Below are positions 30,137 through 42,118 of a DNA stretch of 64,000 nt, piece by piece. A model generated the notes under the pieces. It ran no database searches, had not been told where the DNA came from, and saw nothing but the letters and a program-made list of their open reading frames with translations. Every line of letters begins with the position of its first letter. Position 1 is the stretch's first letter. The translations under genes were made by a program, and so were the position numbers. Source of the stretch: Selaginella moellendorffii (taxonomy: Eukaryota > Plantae > Lycopodiophyta); assembly GCF_000143415.4 (NCBI RefSeq), contig NW_003314288.1, positions 1,855,515-1,919,514 of the forward strand. Reading direction: 5' to 3'.

Positions 30137-31860
30137 TCACATATCCCAAAACTTTGAGCTCTCTGATCCGGCAGCTTGGTCCGTGGATTCCGTGCAGTTC
30201 GAAAAATCTCTGTATGAGAGGAGCCGCGTGGTGCTTGATGAGGTTGCGATTGCAAGTCTGGGACCTTGACTTGCTAGAGCGGTCGTGCAAGACCCCTGGT
30301 CGAAGCTTGATACCAGAGTCCCATGGTTAGAATCCCAGACGTTTACCACAGTGTCGTCGGGGCCTGCAGTGACAACTTTAACGTCGTCAAGGTGAAGGAA
30401 GTGCACGGGGCTGTCGTGGCCGCAGAGTTCTGCGAGAGCCTGATGGTTGCTTCTAGTGTCCCATAGCTTGCAAGTCCTTGAAAAGAAAAATCAAACTTCT
30501 GAATTAATTTCGGTTGATTGATACCTGTCGTTGCCTCCAGTGCACAGAAGCTTTCCTGAAGAAGATAGCGCAGTAGCACAGATTCCACCGGGGTGATCAA
30601 TCGTCGCAACAGTTTTCATCGTTCTTAGATCAAGCGCTGCAACGGTAGAGCCTCCTGAAGCGTAGCAAATGGACTGGAACGACTTGAGACTCGTCAAGGA
30701 AGCGGGACCTTTGGCAGCTCCAACGCAAGTTGCCGTATTTGTGTCCCATACTCGCAGCTGTGACGCAAATTTAGCCATGAAAGAGCACATTTTTTTTGCT
30801 CACCTTTGAGTCTTTGGCTCCACTAACCATGATACAAGGATTGTGCCTGGAAAAGAAAAAGACAAAAAGAATCGTGAAACGATTGTCAAGAATCAACATT
30901 CTTACCCAGCTACTGCCAAGTCTTTAATATATGATTCGTGACCATATAACGTTGTTAGTAATGGTGTTCGGCCGCCATTGAAATTCCATAGTTTCACAGT
31001 GCTGTCCATGCCACCGGAAGCAATTACCGTTGCTTGTCCAAGAAGCCTGTCTGCAATAACGCTGACCCCATCAGAGTGACCTCTAAGAGTTCTCAAGCTT
31101 CGACCCTGTGTGTTTGAAGTGATACAAGGAAAGACAATCGAGGAAAAAAAAAGATACCTTTCCCCATATACGAATGGTATGATCAGCACTGCATGTAGCT
31201 AAAATGTTGTCTCCAATGAAGTAATTGCGAAGTCCACCTACAGGAAATAATCTGAGCCATGACAAAGAATTAAAACTAGAAAGGAAAAACAACGTGACGA
31301 TCAACTACACACCTCATGCAGTTAATTCTGGCGCTATGATCATTGAGAACTTTCAACCCAGATGAACTGAGCATTACAACTAGAACTTCCGAGCCCTGAG
31401 GAGAAAAGTGGAAACCAAAGGTTTTTAAAGAAGTGCAAAGTTGCGCCTTACTCGAGCTGCTACAATGGCATCTTCGTGGATCAAAATCTGCTTGACCATC
31501 GTCGGTAGCGAAAGTTTCCACTCGAAAGGATCCCTGAATCGAAACTGCTGACACGCAATGAGCCTGCCGAGGTAATCATCTCTTCCACCGAGAAACTCAA
31601 ACAATCCGGAAGTAGTTTGCTTGGCCGGCCAGCGGATTCTAGATGGAAGAAAGCTAGGATAAGCTAGAATTCGTCTAAGATAAGCTACAATTCGCTGCTT
31701 ACCGGCATTGGCGTTCCCAAAGGGGATCGGCGTAGGCGATTTGTCGAAGGCGCTTGCATGACATCGCCAAATGTGAGAGATCTCTGAGATCGAGCGACCC
31801 CGCGCAGAGCAATAGAGGGTCCGAGGGAAGATCCAAAAGCTCAGTGGGAGACGACTCCAT
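30137..31860 (-). CDS. F-box/WD40-repeat protein, multi-exon
   Basis: N-terminal F-box (LLDLPSDPLLLCAGSLDLRDLSHLAMSCKRLRQIA); WD40 repeats (LRGHSDGV...SGGMDSTVKLWN, LYGHESY, TAGPDDTVVNVWD). Confidence 0.9.
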
Positions 31861-32049: not shown

Positions 32050-35000
32050 ATGGCCAGGCGCTTGAGCGCCGGGGTGTTTGAGGCCGCCTCCAAGGCCGTG
32101 TCCAAGCTCACGGAGCGGTAAGATTTCCATTCCAAGAGAATGTAGCTTAGCGATTTGGTGTTCTTGGGGGCAGTGCACCAGATCCGGAGGAAGATCCGGA
32201 TTTCCTAGCTCGAAATCCCCGATGGGAAGATCAACTCCCTCCCATTCATGGTGTCGGGAAGCCACAGGATGACAAAGCGCAATCTACTGCCGCCTTGCTA
32301 GCTGCGCTCGAGAATCTTCCACGCGCTCCCGAGTCCTTGCCGAGGAAGAATTGGAAGAAGGCTTACAAGGCAGTCAAGCGCATACTGGTTTGTATCAGCT
32401 CAACTTTTTTGTTTCTTTCATCCATTCTTATTATTTCTTTGTTTCAGCTCATAAGAAGGAAGGCGAGAAGGAGTGCTGTAGGCACTGGAGCTCGGATGGA
32501 GGGTCATGCTCTAGGGTTTTGGAGTCCTTACAGCTCTGTTCGCCTCAATCTCTTCATGTTTCTTCACTGCCAGTACGTTACTGCTCGCGTTTTCTTGTTG
32601 GTGGTTGCTTACACTGTTTGCAGAAAAGCGGAATACTTCCTCTGCTTTCTCATATTTTCACATATCATAGTGCTGATTTTCCAAGTAAAGGTCGGGCACA
32701 GAGGTGAAAGGTGGACGGAAATACGAGACTTCAACCTCGATTTTCTGGATGGGTTTATTACCGCACTTTACACGTACGTCTAAGCGACTGAAGACTTAGC
32801 GTTATTGTGTGATTTCCTACAGGTTGGAGATGGCTTTGAAGATTTGCTGTCTGGGGCTTTACCAGAAAAGCCACTGCTACCTTCGGAATCCGTATAACAG
32901 GCTTGATTTTGCGGTCGTTGTCGACTCCTGGTACTTGCAACTTCTCTTCCTTTTCCTTTCCACAAGCATGCTTTAGTATTATCCGAGTTACAGGATTCAT
33001 ATCATTGTTAGAGGCATAACTGGAAAGGACTTCTTTGCACGAGTTGCAGTTTTCCGTGCATTTCGAGGCCTCCTCGCATTGAAGCATATCACCTTTTTCG
33101 CGGATGTCATTGTATGCTGCCGTTTTGTGTACATGTCAGCTTCATCGATGATGTAATAGCTAGCAATTGTGTTTTTTTCTTGTTCTTTACAGTCTATCAT
33201 GGCAGCCGTTAAGAGGAGTGTTGGCCCGCTTCAAAATGTCATACTGCTGACATTCTTTATGCTGGTCTTTTACGCGCTACTTGGGACTCAGTTTTTGCAA
33301 AAAACTATGTCTCAAAGGTATAAGAGTTTTGATGAAGTCCATTTCATGAAAGCTGTCTTGTAGGTGCTTGCGGACAACCGATTTACGGCTATCATATCCA
33401 GAACGCTTCTGTGACAAGAAGGTCATTGATGGATACATCTGCCCTTCTAATCAGAAGTGTAAGGTGAGGTTTGGAATGCTCCCAAGCTGTCACTTATAAC
33501 GTTGTCTTTACAGGTATACGGAAATCCTAACTTTGGATGTACAAGTTTTGATTACCTCTGGTGGTCTCTACTTACTATGTTTCAGGTTTGTTTCTGTTTA
33601 TGGAGAAAGGAATTTTCAGTTGGTATTCCAAAGTAAATGATTTACTTACAGTAAACATTTTCAGATCGTATCCTTGGAGGGATGGAGCCTCATTATGTAC
33701 CGCGTGAAGGATGCCGAAGGAGAACGAGCTAGTAATATCTTCGACTTGCCGGGTTTAGCTATGCTAATACTTGCAATGCAGATTCATATTTTATGACCTT
33801 AGTAGTCATTGGCACGTATTTTCTTTGCAACGTGTTCATTGCGGGAATAAGTGGCGTTTTCCTTCGGGTCAGGGCAGAACATCAGGCATGGTTCTTTTGT
33901 ATTGTTTATGTCTTTCTAATTCGTCTTCGTATAGGCGCTTTTGAAAAAATCTCGTAAAAACCAGACTTCCTTTTACAATGCAACGGTGATGGCTGATATA
34001 CTCAAGGACGATATTATAAAAGACGAAGCGAATATGAAGTGGCATTTACGTATTCTGAACAGATCCAAGAAAGTCAAAAGGAGTGTCTTCCGAGCTTTAA
34101 GTCGTACTCAGTCATCTATGAGAGATGCTTTTCATGCTACTTCGTTCCGTATGAGCCGGATAGGCTCAGAACGATATAACCGGTCGTTAAGTCGAAGCGT
34201 AACGATGGGAGTTAGAGCAGCCGCATCTATCTCTGAACAATCTCGTGCCATCGTACAACATCCAAGTTTTGACTGGGGGGTGCTGTTGGCTGTTACAGTT
34301 AACGCGGTTGTTTTATGTTTGTACAGGTATGGCATGTCGAAGGATCTCTTATATATACTCTGTATCCACATTGCTGTTTGCTTCTTGCTTTTCACTTTGC
34401 TGGCCCTTAACTTGACAACTTTAGATGGCATTCAAGCTGTGCTTCTTGTCACTTTTGCCGCCGAGTTGCTACTGCGATTTCTTGCTTTCGGCCCGCCCAC
34501 ATTTTACGAGGACAGTACGTGACGTTCACATTCTCCGTGCCTCAGTGTTTGATCTTGATTGTGGTTGCAGAGATGAACATGGTAGATCTGTTTGTTGTAG
34601 CGGTCTCTGCTGGAGCTCTGGTTTCACGAGCGTATCCAAATATCAGCGCGTTTCGAATTATGCGATGGTTCTACCTGTCAAAGAAATACGTTGACAAGCA
34701 TCCTTCCGTTGTGGTGAGTTTTCTGACCTGGGGTGTGCATTTGACTGTTTTTTGTGACGTTCTAGGCCACTTGCATAAGCGCTGTTGGCTCACTGGTTGG
34801 CGTATTCTTTTTCTATGTGCTTGTTATAGTTATAATGTCTATCATAAGCATGGAACTGTTTAGCGGTCAGTATTATAAGTTTGCGGATGGCTATCCTCGT
34901 GCACACCACGATTCTATGCTCCAGACTATGCTTCTGTGGTTCTCGGTAACCACCGCTGAAGGCTGGCCGAATCAAATGTGGAACTCCATGCGACCCGGGG

Positions 35001-38000
35001 TGCTATATAAGTACGTTGCCTTGATCACTTGTAGTCAAATTCTTATGAGTGTTGTTTATGTGCAGCGGAGTGGCGCCCTTTCTTTACGTTTTCTACTTCG
35101 TTTTAACAGTCCATATTATTATGAACCTCATCATTGCCGTTCTACTGGAGAAAAACGAGCTTACAGACAACCAGAAGAAGCAAATACAAAGGGTACGTCG
35201 GCTCAAGCTCTTGACAAAGACGTATTCTGTGACATTTTCCTGCAGACAGAGCACATGAGGTTGATCAGGCGCATGCAAAGCAGAGTTTTCACGAGAAGTG
35301 GAAGCTGGGTTGTTGGTGCGGTCGAAGGAATGAAAACAGGTCTTGGAAATCTGGCGTATCGAGTTTTAAGCATGAACGTTAGACCTGTGAAAACGCAAAG
35401 CAAGAAGCAAAAACATCGTTCTCGACGCAAGGACCGGGACTCTGGCAAAGGACAGGATAATCTGGAGGCAGTGTCTACTGCAGCTGCAGAGCAAACCAGT
35501 GCCAGCTCGACTGAGCCGCAAAGACGACGCAGCCGGAATTCTCAGATTTTGCAAGCTTCTGGATTTCCCCCTAACATTGGAGAGAAGCGAGGGTCGAGAA
35601 CTGCACTTGAGGATGCTGTGTTAACTCTTGCCGACATCACTAAGCCTCCGTCCTTCAAATCTCCCAGCTTGCTTCTTAGCAGAGACATGAGCAGAAAAGG
35701 CTCGGGTAAAAGGCAGTCGTTCCAGTTATCGGACTATGAAGAGCTTGAAAAGAACATCGACAGCATCGAAAGGCCATGGTACCTGCATGAAGGCTCTCTT
35801 CTCTTGTTCGGAGAGAAGAGTCACCTGAGAAAGCATTGCAAAGCTATCGTCGAGAGCAAGTGGTGGGAATGGTTTTCTATAGCTTGGGTTGGCATAGGTA
35901 CGTGGATTGTCATCGAGATGCGGGCAACTGGGGAGCCGGTATTTGCACCCACTGCTATCAAAGTGCTGCACAAGCTTGTGCTTGTGGTAAGAGTCAAGCT
36001 ATATGTCTTCATTACTTAGACTCGAGTTGCAGGTTTTCATGCTGGAGCTGCTGCTCAAGGTTATAGCCAACGGTTTTATGTTCTCGCCGGATGCCGTCCT
36101 AAACGACCCGTACAACATCCTCGATATTTTCATTGTTATCATCGACGCGGTCAATCTTGCCACCTGGGGTGAGAAATCCAGAAGAGCTGTTCATGCCTTG
36201 ACGGCATTGCGGCCATTCCGCTTCATCAGTAGGATAAGTGGACTGCGCTCCTTAATGTCCAACCTGGTCAAGACGCTTCCTGCCATCATCGCTGTGCTGC
36301 TATTCACATTTATGCTCTTCGTGACTTTCGGCTCCATCGGGATCCAGCTCTTTCGAGGTCGTCTCTACTTTTGCAACGACAGCAGAATATCTCATCGAGC
36401 CTATTGCACCGGGCACTACTACAACAATGTTGGCGTTTACTCTCCGCGGGCCTGGGTAAATCCGAACTTCCACTTTGACGACATTGGTAATGCTTTTCTC
36501 TCTTTATTCGTCTGCTCTACCTTCGACAATTGGGTAACGAATTGGCTGTATCCAGCAATGGATATTGTTGGTGAAAACAAGCAGCCGCAACGGGACAACA
36601 GCCCGGCTTATGCCTTGTACTTCGTGGCGTTCTGCGTTTGCGGAGGATTTTTTATCATCAGGGTGTTCATCGGAGTTTTTATAAACGAGTTTGGAAAGAA
36701 TTCTGGGTCGCTGCTCTTGACGGAGAGGCAGAAGCTATGGCGGGACATGAACCGTATTATTCAGAAGCTAAAACCAGGGGCACTGCCACGACCACCGAAG
36801 AACTATATCAGAAAGCTGTGCTTCTATGCGATCCGGAACCGGCATTACCAGAACACTATGATTGTTTGCCTTCTTGGTTACTCTGGACTCTTGGCTACGA
36901 ACTATGCCGGCCAGCCAGCGTATGTATCCAATCGCCGCCAGAAAGCTCATTGCGCGCTCACTGCGTATTTTTTGATGGAGTCATTGACCAAGTTTCTCGG
37001 CGACGAGGTATAAAGCTGCGTGTTTTGTTTTTCTTTCTCATGAAACGTTGTTTTATTGCTGGTTTTGCAGTTTAGAGTTTACAGATACGAGTATTCAAGA
37101 CACATAGAGGCTGTGATTTCCATCTTAGCAGGGGCGGGATTGATGGGATTGAAGGGAACACCCAGGGGTTATGTTGGCCGGTTTGCTTACATTGCTCGGG
37201 TGTTTTGCATCATTCCTCACGTACCAAGAGCTCGGGTCATTATGAGAGTGATGTTCATATGCTGCCCGACTATAGGAGAGATCATGGCTCTTCTGGGGAT
37301 TTTCCTCTTCTTGTTCGCTGGAATCGGTTTCCAGATGTTCAGCCAAGTCGCGGATGGAGCTTGTATTGGTCCGCTGGTTAACTTCAAAACCTTTGTGAAT
37401 TCCTTCATTACCGTGTTTCAAGTAAGTTCGTTTGCATTTTAGTTCTGCTCGTGATTAGCTAATGCTTGTTTCATAGGTAACGACGCTTGACAACTGGTCG
37501 TGCATTATGGCCGACGCGATGCTGGGTACTCCAAAATGTACCGATGGCAACACCATGCTGAAGAACGACTGTGGTTATCCTTTTGCGGGAGTGATATACT
37601 TCGTCTGCTTGATCGTGGTGGCAAGCCACATCTTCATGAACCTGTTTGTAGCCGTGATTCTCGATGCCATCACTTTTGGATTGGTGAACGAGAATTCAAT
37701 GGTGACGCCGGAGCACCTTCTCGCGTTTAAGTCTCTATGGGCTGAATTGCCTTTCGATCCCGAGTAAGCATTTTACTTCGTTGATCAGGCTTCTCACTTT
37801 ACTTTGAGCAGGGCCACGGGTTATATTGGCATGCACAAGCTACGGCGTTTCGTAAACTCTCTAGGAATTCCTCTGGGACGTCGCTACAATGCCACCGTTC
37901 AATGGTGATCTAAACACTCATGTCAAGCTTCTCACTCTCCTACTCCCATTTCAGGTACCTGAGGATCGAGTTCGAGGTCATGAGCTTCCGGGTTCCAAAC

Positions 38001-38381
38001 AAAGGGATTCCTTTCAAGCAGCTGCTAGAAACTTTGACGCTGTACAAGATCGGACCCACAGTTAAGCCTTTTCGTTTCATGGTTCTCGTGGCTTGAGTGT
38101 TTCTCAACAATGCACAGGGTCTACCGCTCACTTTACGCATCGAAAGAGAGAAGCGCATCCAAGACGTGTATATCCGCGGCGCGACCACGAAAGTCCAGGC
38201 ACTTGTGCGGGGATTTCTAGTAAGGAGGCGAGCTGCCCGGGCTAGAGGAGAAGAATTTGAGGGAGGATTGCCGTTGCTCAAAGACGATCAAAGCGGTGGA
38301 AACGAAGAACCGCAACAAGATGAACAGCAAGAACAGCAACTAAGAAGCAAATCCATGCTCGTGGAAGAAGAAGGAAGTTAG
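32050..38381 (+). CDS. Four-domain (4x6TM) cation channel alpha subunit, Cav/Nav/NALCN superfamily, pore E-E-D-D
   Basis: Four P-loops (SLEGW, TAEGW, TFDNW, TLDNW); NPNFGCTSFD, WVNPNFHFDDIGNAFLSLF, MNLFVAVILD, an EF-hand-like segment and IQ motif VQALVRGFLVRR. Start inferred at ATG 32050 with intron 32118-32173. Confidence 0.92.
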
Positions 38382-38473: not shown

Positions 38474-41400
38474 ATGAGCATTCGGGCATGGCGGGCGAAA
38501 TCCTTGCAGCACGGTAGCGCCGCATCGCTGGGAGAGGCCGCATTGCTGGAAATCCAGCGCCTCGCAGCGATTCATCGAGAGGGTAAGCAGCAGCAGGATC
38601 GAAATCTTCATGGCGAGCAGGAGATCAAAGATCATGCGAACCGCATCCGGCAGTGCGGGCGAGCCGGAGATCTGGCCGAGGCCGAGCGGGTTCACGCCGC
38701 GGTGCTGCGATCCGGGCTCGGCGGCGATCGCTTCCTCTCCAATCTCTTGGTGGAGATGTACGGCAGGTGCGGCGGCGTGGAGGGCTCCCGTACGGCGTTC
38801 GATGCCATTGAGTCCCCAAACGTCTACTCGTGGACGCTGCTCATCGCGGCATATGCCCGCAATGGGCATCACAGGGAGGCCATAGAGGCGCTGAGGAGAA
38901 TGGATCTGGATGGAGTAGAGGCCGATACTTTCACTTACTCCACCATTTTCAACATGATCTCGCGCAAGGAGATGCTGCCCCAGGCAAGGTGGCTCCACGA
39001 GAGAGTCTCGACGTCTTTGGAGCTTGGGTTGAACAGAGATATCTTCCTGGGAACTGCCATCGTCAACATGTATGGGAAATGTGGCAGCATACACGACGCC
39101 GAAGAGATCTTCTTTCGGATGGAGCACAGGGACGTGGTGGCCTGGAACGCGATGCTCTCGGCCTATGCTCACAACGGGTACGAGCTCGAGGCGGCCAAAC
39201 TGTTCCAGGAGATGGAACACGAGGGAGTCAAGGCGGACAGGGTGGTTTTTGTGAGCCTTCTCGAGGCTTGCTCTAAGCTGGGGGACTTGGAGCAAGGGAA
39301 GGTGGTGCACGGGCGCGTGACCGAGCTCGGGTTTGAGGCCGAGGACGTTCTCGGGCACGCGCTGGTGAACTTATACGGGAAGTGTGGAGCGCTGGAGGAA
39401 GCGAGGTCGCTTTTTGGTAAGATTGTTTCTAAGAATGTGGTGTCGTGGAACGTCTTGATAACGGCCTATCTGCAGAACGGGCTCGTGGAGGATGCACTCA
39501 AGCTCTTCACAGAGATGGCGCTGGATGGGACCAGACCCGACGACGTGACCTTCAACAATCTCGTCAACTTGTGCACGGGGGTGGTGAGCTTAGAACAAGC
39601 CAGGATTCTCCACCGGCGATTGATCGAGAGTGAGATCCACGTAGACGCTGTAATGAGGAACGCCGTCATGAATCTCTACGTGAAAGCTGGGAGTTTGGAA
39701 GATGCCAGGGCCGAGTTCTATCGCATGGAAGTCAGGGACGTGGTTTCGTGGACGCTCATGCTTTCGACATACTCGCAGTCTGGATACGTAGACGAAGCAT
39801 TCAAGCTGTTTCATCAGATGGACCTTGAAGGCATTGAGGCCGATGCCGTCACCTACATTGCAGTTCTCGACGCCTGTGATTGCTCCGAGCTCCTGGAGCA
39901 AGGCCGGAGAGTGCGCGCTCGAGCAGCTCAGTCAGCTTTTCATGAAGATGTTGCTGTCAGCACTTCGCTCGTCAACATGTATGGGAAGTGCGGAAGCTTA
40001 GTCGAAGCCAAGACATTGTTCGACGGGATGAGCTTTAGGAACGAGTTATCATGGAACGCAATGGTGAGAGTTCTCGGGTTTAACGGGCAGAGCAGCGAGG
40101 CCTTTCGAGTCTATCGGGTGATGCAGCTAGAAGGGGTCAAGCCAGACTCGACTACGTTACTCATCCTCCTCGACGCTTGCAAAGATTTGTCACAGGGCCG
40201 GATGGTCCACTCCAAGATCATCGAATGTGGATTCGATCGGGACAAAGGTGTCCCGCACACGCTTGTGATCATGTACGGGAAGCATGGAGATCTAGAAGAA
40301 GCCAACCAAGTGTTTCGGAAAAGTGTCCTGGATTGCGGAAAGGATCTAGCCAGCTTATGGAACGCTTTCATCGTAGCTCACACACACAACGGCCAGACCG
40401 AACAAGCAGCTCAGCTTCTTCACAGCATGGACCTCCAGGGCGTAAGACTCAACAAGTTCAGCTACGTTGCTCTGCTCGACGCATGCTCGACGTTACAACA
40501 GGTGGAGCAGCTCCACTTACGACTGCTTGCGGAAGGATTGGAGGCAGATCAAGAGATTGGCAACACACTCATCACCTCGTATGGCCAGTGTGGTAACATA
40601 GACGCTTCAAGAGCCGTCTTCACGGGAATGGAGTGCAAGAACGTGATTTCCTGGACTTCTTCCATTGTAGCTCACGCAACCAACGGACAGGCTAGCCAGG
40701 CGATGGGGCTGCTTCATCAAATGCATCTAGAAGGCGTTCATCCAAACAAAGTCACTTTGCTGGGCTTGATCGATGCGTGCGTGAGCCTGGCAGCAGCAGT
40801 GGACAAAAACGAGAGAAGTATCGTCATACCGGAGTATGTTCTATCTGTGGCCAGCAGATTCGAGTCGACTATCGTTCTAGAGACTGCGCTGCTCAACATG
40901 CACGCCAAGTGTGGCAACGTAGAGGAAGCCGAGAGGATTTTTTTTGAGAAGATGGCCGATGGGGAAAGGGACTCTATCGCATGGAATGCCATGGTTTCTG
41001 CCTATGCTACCAACGGACACGGCCTGGAGGCGATTGAAGTAGTGCGAAGGATGGACTTGGAAGGGATAAAGCTGCACAGAGTCACCTTTCTGGGCCTGCT
41101 GGACGCCATTGCTGGAGTGGGAGACATCACGATGGTGAAGCAGACACACGCAAGGCTGACCGAGGCAGGAGTTCTTCCCAGCCTCGCACTAGAGAACAGT
41201 CTCATAGCTGCTTATGGACGTTGCGGGAGTGTGGAGGATGCAAAGTCTGTTTTCAAGGGTATCTCGTGCAACAAGGATTCCGTCTCCTGGGGCGCTCTCA
41301 TCGTGGCTCTCTCCCAAAACTGGCAGGCTTCTCCGGCACTAGAGCTCCTCAAGAGCATGGACTTGGAAGGGGTCAAGGCAGGAAAGGTGGCGCTGCTGAG

Positions 41401-42118
41401 AATGGTGGAGTCGTGTGCGCTGCTGGGAGCTCTTGCTCACGGCAAATCTCTCCACACTCGCATCCTCCGCTCGGGCTTCCAGGCGGAAGAGGTCCTCGCC
41501 AACGCACTCATCGCCATGTACGGGAAGTGCGGCTGCCTGGAGACCGCCAGGAAGCTCTTCGAAGACGAGCTCCAGACGCCTGATCCCGGTGGTAGAACCA
41601 GGAAGAACAACGTAGTAACTTGGACGACGATGGTCACCATCTACACGTCCGCTGGCCACCCCAGTGAAGCGCTGGAGCTCTTCTACGGCATGGTGTTGCA
41701 AGGCGTCCTTCCCACGTCGGTAACGCTCACCAGCATTCTCAGCGGCTGCAGCCACGCCGGCCTCGTCGGCCAGGGGATCCGCTACTTTGCGTGCATGGTG
41801 GAAGATCACGGCGTCACTCCCACGGCGGATCACATGAACTGCCTTGTAGACTTGCTGGGACGAGCAGGCTGGCTCCGGGAGGCCGAGGACTTGATCAGGA
41901 AGATGCCGGCGGGAGACCCTCTAACTTGGAAGGTCCTCCTGGGAGCTTGTAGGCTCCATGGAGACTTGGAGAGAGGCACAAACGCAGCGCGGAAGGCATC
42001 AAACTTCCTTGACCACTGCGATTCGTCGCCTTACGTGTTGCTGAGCAACATGTACCTGGAGAAGGATCCACAAAGCTTGACAAACTGCGAATCGTCCGGA
42101 CTAGTTCCAACTTCATGA
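38474..42118 (+). CDS. PLS-class pentatricopeptide repeat protein with C-terminal E domain, no DYW; intronless, 1214 aa
   Basis: Repeated MYGKCGSxxxA / VVSWNxM PLS triplets; ACSHAG-like GCSHAG, CLVDLLGRAG, WKVLLGACRLHG and YVLLSNMY. Confidence 0.96.
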   Translation: MSIRAWRAKSLQHGSAASLGEAALLEIQRLAAIHREGKQQQDRNLHGEQEIKDHANRIRQCGRAGDLAEAERVHAAVLRSGLGGDRFLSNLLVEMYGRCGGVEGSRTAFDAIESPNVYSWTLLIAAYARNGHHREAIEALRRMDLDGVEADTFTYSTIFNMISRKEMLPQARWLHERVSTSLELGLNRDIFLGTAIVNMYGKCGSIHDAEEIFFRMEHRDVVAWNAMLSAYAHNGYELEAAKLFQEMEHEGVKADRVVFVSLLEACSKLGDLEQGKVVHGRVTELGFEAEDVLGHALVNLYGKCGALEEARSLFGKIVSKNVVSWNVLITAYLQNGLVEDALKLFTEMALDGTRPDDVTFNNLVNLCTGVVSLEQARILHRRLIESEIHVDAVMRNAVMNLYVKAGSLEDARAEFYRMEVRDVVSWTLMLSTYSQSGYVDEAFKLFHQMDLEGIEADAVTYIAVLDACDCSELLEQGRRVRARAAQSAFHEDVAVSTSLVNMYGKCGSLVEAKTLFDGMSFRNELSWNAMVRVLGFNGQSSEAFRVYRVMQLEGVKPDSTTLLILLDACKDLSQGRMVHSKIIECGFDRDKGVPHTLVIMYGKHGDLEEANQVFRKSVLDCGKDLASLWNAFIVAHTHNGQTEQAAQLLHSMDLQGVRLNKFSYVALLDACSTLQQVEQLHLRLLAEGLEADQEIGNTLITSYGQCGNIDASRAVFTGMECKNVISWTSSIVAHATNGQASQAMGLLHQMHLEGVHPNKVTLLGLIDACVSLAAAVDKNERSIVIPEYVLSVASRFESTIVLETALLNMHAKCGNVEEAERIFFEKMADGERDSIAWNAMVSAYATNGHGLEAIEVVRRMDLEGIKLHRVTFLGLLDAIAGVGDITMVKQTHARLTEAGVLPSLALENSLIAAYGRCGSVEDAKSVFKGISCNKDSVSWGALIVALSQNWQASPALELLKSMDLEGVKAGKVALLRMVESCALLGALAHGKSLHTRILRSGFQAEEVLANALIAMYGKCGCLETARKLFEDELQTPDPGGRTRKNNVVTWTTMVTIYTSAGHPSEALELFYGMVLQGVLPTSVTLTSILSGCSHAGLVGQGIRYFACMVEDHGVTPTADHMNCLVDLLGRAGWLREAEDLIRKMPAGDPLTWKVLLGACRLHGDLERGTNAARKASNFLDHCDSSPYVLLSNMYLEKDPQSLTNCESSGLVPTS

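Follow-up and report, generated by a model that had tools for sequence, protein, structure and literature searches.

The DNA analyzed here (the window, 64,000 nucleotides (nt) of the lycophyte Selaginella moellendorffii, contig NW_003314288.1 of assembly GCF_000143415.4, forward-strand positions 1,855,515 to 1,919,514) carries at window positions 32050-38381, on the forward strand, the gene of a four-domain cation channel, i.e. of one polypeptide with four repeats of six transmembrane segments each (4 x 6TM). The gene is real, intact and constrained. Embryophytes have been said to be without four-domain channels (PMC4030171, PMC6509283, PMC11085791, PMC6259924) and an explicit search for such channels in this group 'did not reveal' any (PMC5824947). 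The window gene belongs to an undescribed land-plant clade of this known superfamily; the idea was anticipated by Brunet & Arendt 2016 and gene models are public, and our analysis is a correction and an extension.

For the gene model, a self-written spliced protein-to-genome aligner was used with the full-length paralogue P0002 as guide. The resulting model has 23 exons and a coding sequence of 5100 nt for 1699 amino acids (aa) in an unbroken frame:

32050-32117, 32174-32387, 32448-32572, 32624-32773, 32823-32930, 32994-33111, 33193-33317 and 33364-33463, forward strand: exons 1 to 8
33514-33585, 33665-33731, 33782-33885, 33935-34361, 34425-34514, 34571-34713, 34766-35010 and 35066-35192, forward strand: exons 9 to 16
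35246-35986, 36033-37007, 37071-37421, 37477-37763, 37812-37904, 37955-38060 and 38118-38381, forward strand: exons 17 to 23

The ATG lies at 32050 and the stop codon at 38379-38381, and an initial annotation made from the letters of the window alone had given exactly this start and this last base. It had also noticed no inactivating lesion, and indeed neither a stop nor a frameshift interrupts the frame of 1699 aa. The introns measure 46-81 nt; 21 of the 22 are of the GT-AG type and a single one, 33886-33934 on the forward strand, is GC-AG. All 22 exon junctions are free of insertions and deletions when compared with three paralogues and with Diphasiastrum, Ceratopteris and Marchantia. In addition, 11 of the 22 introns were confirmed by RNA (introns 1, 2, 3, 4, 7, 9, the GC-AG intron 11, 12, 15, 16 and 22), using the contig runs X1 and X2, which must be transcript assemblies because splice joints are present in them, and the raw RNA-seq runs X7 and X8. 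In detail, the evidence for introns 1 and 12 is a loose end matching the adjoining exon, the GC-AG intron is covered by a 49-nt joint in X1 that fits GC..AG within a positional ambiguity of 4 nt, and intron 16 was shifted by four bases to 35193-35245 on the RNA joints. The remaining 11 introns had no covering RNA record.

Exons from all four repeats match Pfam Ion_trans (for 36003-37010 with E 2e-38). In P0175 and P0002, two paralogues of full length, four such stretches and an IQ motif score above threshold. The 1699-aa model aligns end to end with relatives of 1700-2000 aa, so that all four six-transmembrane repeats lie in one polypeptide. Against PDB, the domain III exon finds Cav3.2 (E 7e-67) and Cav3.3 (E 2e-63), followed by Cav1, Cav2, Nav and NALCN, with E-values for solved Cav3, Cav1 and Nav chains ranging from 1e-67 to 1e-40. 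These remote searches were queried with window exons or RefSeq paralogues, while the spliced 1699-aa protein was analyzed in scripts. By sequence, the homology to solved four-domain channels is unambiguous, and the match of motifs and architecture is far beyond chance.

Each repeat has one pore loop with the filter residue two positions before a conserved tryptophan, as is usual in the superfamily. The four loops that the initial annotation had read from the sequence (filter codons at 33677, 34958, 36525 and 37489) were all found at precisely these positions by sequence and alignment:

33671-33685, forward strand: pore loop I, SLEGW, filter residue E, codon GAG at 33677
34952-34966, forward strand: pore loop II, TAEGW, filter residue E, codon GAA at 34958; the next residue is G and not the 'beacon' D
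36519-36533, forward strand: pore loop III, TFDNW, filter residue D, codon GAC at 36525
37483-37497, forward strand: pore loop IV, TLDNW, filter residue D, codon GAC at 37489

The same E-E-D-D filter is present in all four Selaginella genes, in both Diphasiastrum genes and in Marchantia. The filter of Ceratopteris is E-D-D-D, the only exception among plant orthologues with all four pore loops, and those of Ginkgo and Riccia are compatible with E-E-D-D where sequence exists. All Ca2+-selective four-domain channels are reported to carry an aspartate directly after the filter residue (high-field-strength site plus one, HFS+1) of domain II or IV, and Cav channels become Na+-permeable when it is neutralized (PMC10120453). 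No plant member has an acidic residue at HFS+1; outside the window gene the domain II position is S, G, N or otherwise not D. As this 'beacon' aspartate is missing, strict Ca2+ selectivity is not assured. Thus the Ca2+ permeability proposed in the initial annotation is likely, since an acidic ring speaks for binding and passage of Ca2+, whereas selectivity for this ion is not and may be low.

The voltage sensors (segments S4 of all four domains) were compared with Cav3, Cav1 and Nav by alignment, and the linker between domains III and IV and the C-terminus were examined for motifs:

33034-33090, forward strand: S4 of domain I, in-register R-R-L-K
34639-34692, forward strand: S4 of domain II, R-R-Y-K
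36177-36248, forward strand: S4 of domain III, R-H-T-R-R(-R)
36711-36767, forward strand: III-IV linker, LLLT followed by ERQKLWRDMNRIIQK, a Nav-like 'inactivation gate' motif of a hydrophobic triplet plus T
37170-37244, forward strand: S4 of domain IV, charge-depleted, with two in-register arginines and with C and P in place of K and K of Cav3
37717-38054, forward strand: EF-hand-like region past the last segment of domain IV (IVS6), aa 1531-1610, spanning two introns and kept across plant orthologues
38193-38231, forward strand: IQ calmodulin-binding motif VQALVRGFLVRRR, VQALVRGFLVR at aa 1638 (Pfam IQ 20.4 bits, cut-off 20.3)

Each of the domains I-III therefore has at least three in-register S4 charges and domain IV has two, from which voltage dependence is not readable. 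The core of the linker (TERQ..RD.NR.IQ) is invariant in an alignment of 10 sequences of the plant relatives of the window gene (A1). The hydrophobic triplet plus T has been inferred to be ancestral in the superfamily and does not guarantee fast inactivation (PMC5824947). The EF-hand-like region and the IQ motif had both been claimed before and both are present. PDB matches to Nav and Cav run on through the EF-hand-like region, and a sub-threshold Pfam GPHH match was found in P0178, a partial allele of paralogue B. The pattern IQxxxRGxxxR is kept in Selaginella, Diphasiastrum, Marchantia and Riccia as well as in a metagenomic sister clade whose filter is E-E-D-E; none of the Cch1 sequences examined has it. 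The alpha-interaction domain (AID) motif was not found in the plant channels; an AID-like pattern occurs only in P0059, P0070, P0072 and P0184, the animal Cav1-type group. Taken together, the channel seems to have changed little from the inferred ancestor of four-domain channels, apart from the replacement of E by D in domains III and IV and a weakened domain IV sensor. The C-terminus of paralogue B (P0175, residues ~1550-1700) contains at least three and up to five tandem IQ-type motifs, compared with one in the window gene.

Automatic annotation has already touched this locus. When the domain III exon was searched exhaustively with HMMER, the result was XP_024536113.1, a protein of 1102 aa named 'sodium channel protein type 9 subunit alpha-like', which must be the RefSeq model of the window locus because its exons are 100% identical to the window by tblastn. 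This model (window 33989-37767) has its start within the I-II linker, at 33989. Introns 12, 15 and 16 are treated as coding in it, the IIS5 portion of exon 15 is passed over and its end falls inside intron 20, so that domain I, IIS5, IIS6 and the C-terminus are missing. The RNA joints contradict it at introns 12, 15 and 16. The RefSeq model is thus wrong, being both truncated and misnamed as a sodium channel. Between 34766 and 36016 of the window, one frame runs on for 417 codons without a stop, through two introns and an exon that is truly read in another frame; this open frame probably led the automatic annotation astray, and RNA joints show that both introns are spliced.

A second allele of the gene is found on the other haplotype (scaffold GL377569.1 of GCA_000143415.2, RefSeq model P0180), whose DNA is 98.04% identical over 13 kb with the same neighbours, a WD40 gene upstream and a gene for a 1214-aa pentatricopeptide repeat (PPR) protein downstream. 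Exons projected onto this allele (L003) give an intact frame of 1699 aa with all 44 splice sites kept. The two coding sequences differ at 53 sites, 34 of them synonymous and 19 non-synonymous, which corresponds to a non-synonymous divergence (dN) of 0.0047-0.0052, a synonymous divergence (dS) of 0.024-0.030 and a dN/dS of 0.16-0.22. As introns differ at 28 of 1232 sites, which is near dS, this ratio indicates that the coding sequence is under purifying selection. The possibility that the gene is a decaying or non-functional copy with residual transcription and no working protein would fit the very low read counts, the skipping of exon 6, the retention of intron 10 (all described below) and the truncation of the RefSeq model to 1102 aa, and the four paralogues would make redundancy possible. 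The RefSeq truncation is however due to introns retained in that model, and the 5100 nt run without stop or frameshift on both haplotypes, with the splice sites and all hallmark residues conserved and with the dN/dS given above. We therefore reject the pseudogene reading and regard it as very unlikely.

Further members of the clade were found in several land plants. In Selaginella itself there are three further loci, P0175 (75% identical), P0002 with its allele P0152 (63%) and P0174 (63%). Orthologues are present in Diphasiastrum complanatum (two genes), Ceratopteris richardii (two genes), Adiantum nelumboides, Ginkgo biloba (Gb_09885, partial), Marchantia polymorpha (Mp2g23520, a single gene), Riccia fluitans and R. 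sorocarpa, and the clade also takes in three transcript fragments without a name. The initial annotation had suggested that presence should be compared with flagellated sperm; the named plant matches do come only from liverworts, lycophytes, ferns and Ginkgo, and no conifer, Gnetum or angiosperm is among them, although those genomes were not searched directly and the word-indexed searches scored 8000 candidates each. Its proposal of a four-domain E-E-D-D channel in a plant with flagellated sperm holds in that the channel is real and intact there, and its guess that homologues may already be catalogued was right, as there are automatic RefSeq models and a Physcomitrella candidate had been noted by Brunet & Arendt 2016. 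The best-scoring streptophyte-alga relative of the plant profile is the more distant and unusually long P0253 (3088 aa) of Mesostigma viride.

In a tree of the plant sequences alone, with the sister clade as root, the branching agrees with that of the species: bryophytes separate from vascular plants, and lycophytes from ferns plus Ginkgo. By this tree, the duplications behind the four Selaginella genes are younger than the divergence from Lycopodiaceae. The sequences thus point clearly to vertical inheritance of the clade from the land-plant ancestor. A contaminant, or algal or protist DNA acquired horizontally, would agree with the reviews that describe land plants as being without such channels (PMC5824947, PMC6259924, PMC11085791). 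The gene lies, however, between the WD40 gene and the gene for the 1214-aa PPR protein on megabase scaffolds of both haplotypes, its introns of 46-81 nt are of the Selaginella type and its tree tracks that of the plants. Synteny, intron type and the vertical gene tree lead us to reject contamination or transfer, which is excluded for practical purposes.

For the position of the clade in the superfamily, 168 sequences were aligned with MAFFT FFT-NS-2 and a tree was calculated with FastTree. The land plants were recovered with a support of 1.0, as was their grouping with the metagenomic clade of intron-free E-E-D-E genes, and the land-plant channels grouped with Cch1 at 0.975. Unrooted IQ-TREE analyses of 54 sequences gave, under both LG+G4 and LG+C20+F+G4, one split with a support of 100 in the Shimodaira-Hasegawa-like approximate likelihood ratio test (SH-aLRT); the land-plant clade also had a support of 100. 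One side of the split holds animal Cav1 (P0059, identified as such through PDB), Cav3 (P0063, P0065, P0261), arthropod Nav, Tetradesmus and Paramecium, and the other holds fungal Cch1, several Discoba, Picozoa, Phytophthora, Mesostigma, the E-E-D-E clade and the land plants. Within this second side the branching order is poorly resolved and the land-plant clade is not sister to Cch1. P0253 of the flagellate Mesostigma lies on the plant side and is not resolved as sister to land plants. The phylogeny that the initial annotation had called for was carried out with Cav, Nav and Cch1 and puts the plants on the Cch1 side. As this tree is unrooted and does not include NALCN, 'on the Cch1 side' and not 'member of NALCN/Cch1' is the appropriate wording. 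By sequence, the plant clade stands as distinct from animal Cav1/2, Cav3 and Nav.

The E-E-D-E genes (L001 10001-14830; L002 5878-10707; P0006, P0068/P0208, P0075, P0092) are the closest relatives outside the plants and are all metagenomic. They are intron-free, lie on gene-dense contigs of up to 79 kb and encode a C-terminal IQ motif; the 79-kb contig has no diagnostic neighbour. Their source is possibly a small green alga.

The resemblance to animal T-type (Cav3) channels, which the initial annotation had pointed out, extends to the shared E-E-D-D filter and not to kinship. If the plant gene were a true orthologue of Cav3, the filter would have been inherited in common, and the domain III exon does score best against Cav3.2 and Cav3.3, and insect Cav3 sequences are the best-scoring animal matches in a word-limited profile search. 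Both groups also share the four-domain architecture and the lack of an AID for the beta subunit. The split with a support of 100, however, separates Cav3 from the plants, and the approximately unbiased (AU) test rejects plants, sister clade and Cav3 as one clade (p 0.0185, log-likelihood difference 88). At full length, P0175 scores 340-332 bits against Cav2.2, Nav1.5 and Cav1.2, 294 against Cav3 and 238, the lowest value, against NALCN. Unlike Cav3, the plant channels are without the domain II aspartate at HFS+1 that Cav3 'always' has, carry fewer S4 charges, and possess a C-terminal IQ motif and the hydrophobic LLLT motif in the III-IV linker. Trees, AU test, HFS+1 residue and full-length scores thus lead us to reject orthology with Cav3, to which we give only a very slight chance.

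Cav1, Cav2 and Nav share with the plant channel the highest full-length similarity (330-340 bits), the EF-hand-like region with IQ motif and the Nav-like gate region between domains III and IV. They differ from it by lying on the opposite side of the main split, and the plant filter is neither EEEE/EDEE nor DEKA and comes without an AID. Tetradesmus, the sole named chlorophyte, has an S-E-N-D filter and also lies on the opposite side of the tree from the plants; no Chlamydomonas CAV2 sequence was returned by any search.

A more serious alternative is a Cch1/NALCN-like channel, weakly voltage-dependent or voltage-insensitive, Ca2+-permeable or a leak channel, that serves general Ca2+ homeostasis or stress signalling and is not specific to sperm; a Mid1/FAM155-like partner might then be used. 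NALCN has been described as the sister of Cch1, with S4 segments poor in arginine and lysine as a criterion (PMC5824947), and the S4 of domain IV is arginine/lysine-poor in this sense in lycophytes only. Cch1 shares with the window gene one charge-poor S4 and with the plants the same side of the split, in line with the grouping obtained by FastTree, and low-level transcripts in libraries without tissue label would suit a general role as well. The plants are nevertheless not sister to Cch1, and their EEDD filter is neither the N-E-E-E of Cch1 nor the lysine-containing filter of NALCN. Furthermore, the S4 segments of Cch1 are much more depleted, whereas domains I-III of the plant channel keep at least three charges each, and the IQ motif of the plants has no counterpart in the Cch1 examined. 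NALCN, which is not in the tree, is the most distant solved relative by score (238 bits against the 330-340 of Cav1/2 and Nav). Finally, a housekeeping role leaves the loss in non-flagellate plants unexplained. We regard this alternative as unlikely, if well short of negligible.

We consider it probable that the gene encodes a functional pore-forming subunit of a four-domain cation channel in Selaginella, with Ca2+ entry in sperm as its most likely role. In such a channel the four pore loops would form an all-acidic E-E-D-D ring that binds and passes Ca2+, and in the missing 'beacon' aspartate lies a hint that the pore probably passes monovalent cations too, with block by Ca2+. Some voltage dependence would be expected from the S4 segments of domains I-III, that of domain IV being depleted. 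The LLLT motif of the III-IV linker could serve as an inactivation particle, and Ca2+ feedback would come from calmodulin bound to the EF-hand-like region together with the IQ motif. The most likely role, suggested by the distribution only, would be Ca2+ entry controlling the flagellar beating or the chemotaxis of spermatozoids. A role in sperm would explain why the gene is retained in plants with motile sperm, and also why its transcripts are so scarce and in part unproductive in the sampled libraries.

Brunet & Arendt 2016 (PMC4685582) reported, in the legend of their Fig. 6, a putative Nav/Cav that reciprocal BLAST had identified in Physcomitrella, with seed plants yielding none, and stated that the loss of Nav/Cav follows the loss of flagella in embryophytes. 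Their candidate is likewise a four-domain channel in a land plant with flagellated sperm. It rests on reciprocal BLAST without sequence analysis, whereas the present work adds liverworts, lycophytes, ferns and the seed plant Ginkgo to the clade and gives gene structure, filter, motifs and phylogeny; the moss sequence itself was not recovered in our searches. The adenylyl cyclase/phosphodiesterase CAPE of streptophytes has a similar distribution tied to motile sperm, and a role in spermatogenesis and sperm motility has been proposed for it (PMC8115329, PMC5159850). CAPE is an unrelated protein family, and tissue-specific expression has been reported for CAPE and not for this channel.

Several points weigh against a Ca2+ channel of sperm. 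The HFS+1 residues of the window gene are G, G, N and N, without an acidic residue in any domain, and S4 of domain IV keeps only two in-register charges in lycophytes; Marchantia retains 4 charges there, the depletion being limited to lycophytes. In the two raw RNA libraries, with 9.2 million records apiece, 8 and 3 reads belong to the gene, and all RNA libraries are without tissue label. In one contig exon 6 (32994-33111, forward strand, with S4 of domain I) is skipped (X1 joint 32929>33192), which shifts the frame and leads to a stop at codon 241 of the skipped form, and in one contig intron 10 (33732-33781, forward strand) is retained, which gives a premature stop (X1 record 3, spanning 33659-33883). 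The absence from conifers, Gnetales and angiosperms rests on named matches and published surveys and not on a direct genome search. On the distribution, the sperm hypothesis is nevertheless the best available; Ca2+ selectivity, voltage gating and the sperm role are all points that we infer. Exon-6 skipping and intron-10 retention may be either low-expression noise or regulated unproductive splicing outside male tissue.

A wider conjecture is that four-domain channels never disappeared from land plants as a whole: a single ancient lineage of them, on the Cch1 side and with E-E-D-D filter, IQ motif and Nav-like linker, would have been retained wherever sperm swim, the seed plant Ginkgo included, as the flagellar Ca2+-entry channel of spermatozoids, and would have been lost together with the flagella in conifers, Gnetales and angiosperms. 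We offer it tentatively, as a scenario that is possible and that may well prove too broad.

Around the channel gene, the following features were noted:

38474-42118, forward strand: intron-less gene for the 1214-aa PPR protein, starting 92 bases past the channel stop and also present on the other haplotype
~30900-31860, reverse strand: upstream gene on the opposite strand, whose open reading frame 30902-31189 is WD40-repeat-like by eye

In the PPR protein, the match to the Pfam E motif is sub-threshold (27.0 bits, cut-off 27.3). At the syntenic site on the other haplotype (L003 1227-3874) a gene for a WD40 beta-propeller protein of 637 aa was called; the F-box-like N-terminus of the WD40-type upstream gene was judged by eye only.

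Our literature search brought up no paper that deals with the Selaginella, Marchantia, fern or Ginkgo genes of this clade. No mention of Mp2g23520, Mapoly0069s0001, the XP accessions or Gb_09885 was found in main texts, nor were these names found in the supplements of two preprints on Marchantia/Physcomitrella reproduction.

The supposed absence of four-domain channels, stated up to 2024-2025, has been used to explain why fast Na+/Ca2+ excitability is missing in plants. The picture of land plants without them is to be corrected, given a conserved and constrained clade that is present in liverworts, lycophytes, ferns and Ginkgo. In addition, the clade is a concrete candidate for the Ca2+ channel of plant sperm motility or chemotaxis, and the single orthologue of Marchantia, Mp2g23520, makes the sperm hypothesis directly testable.

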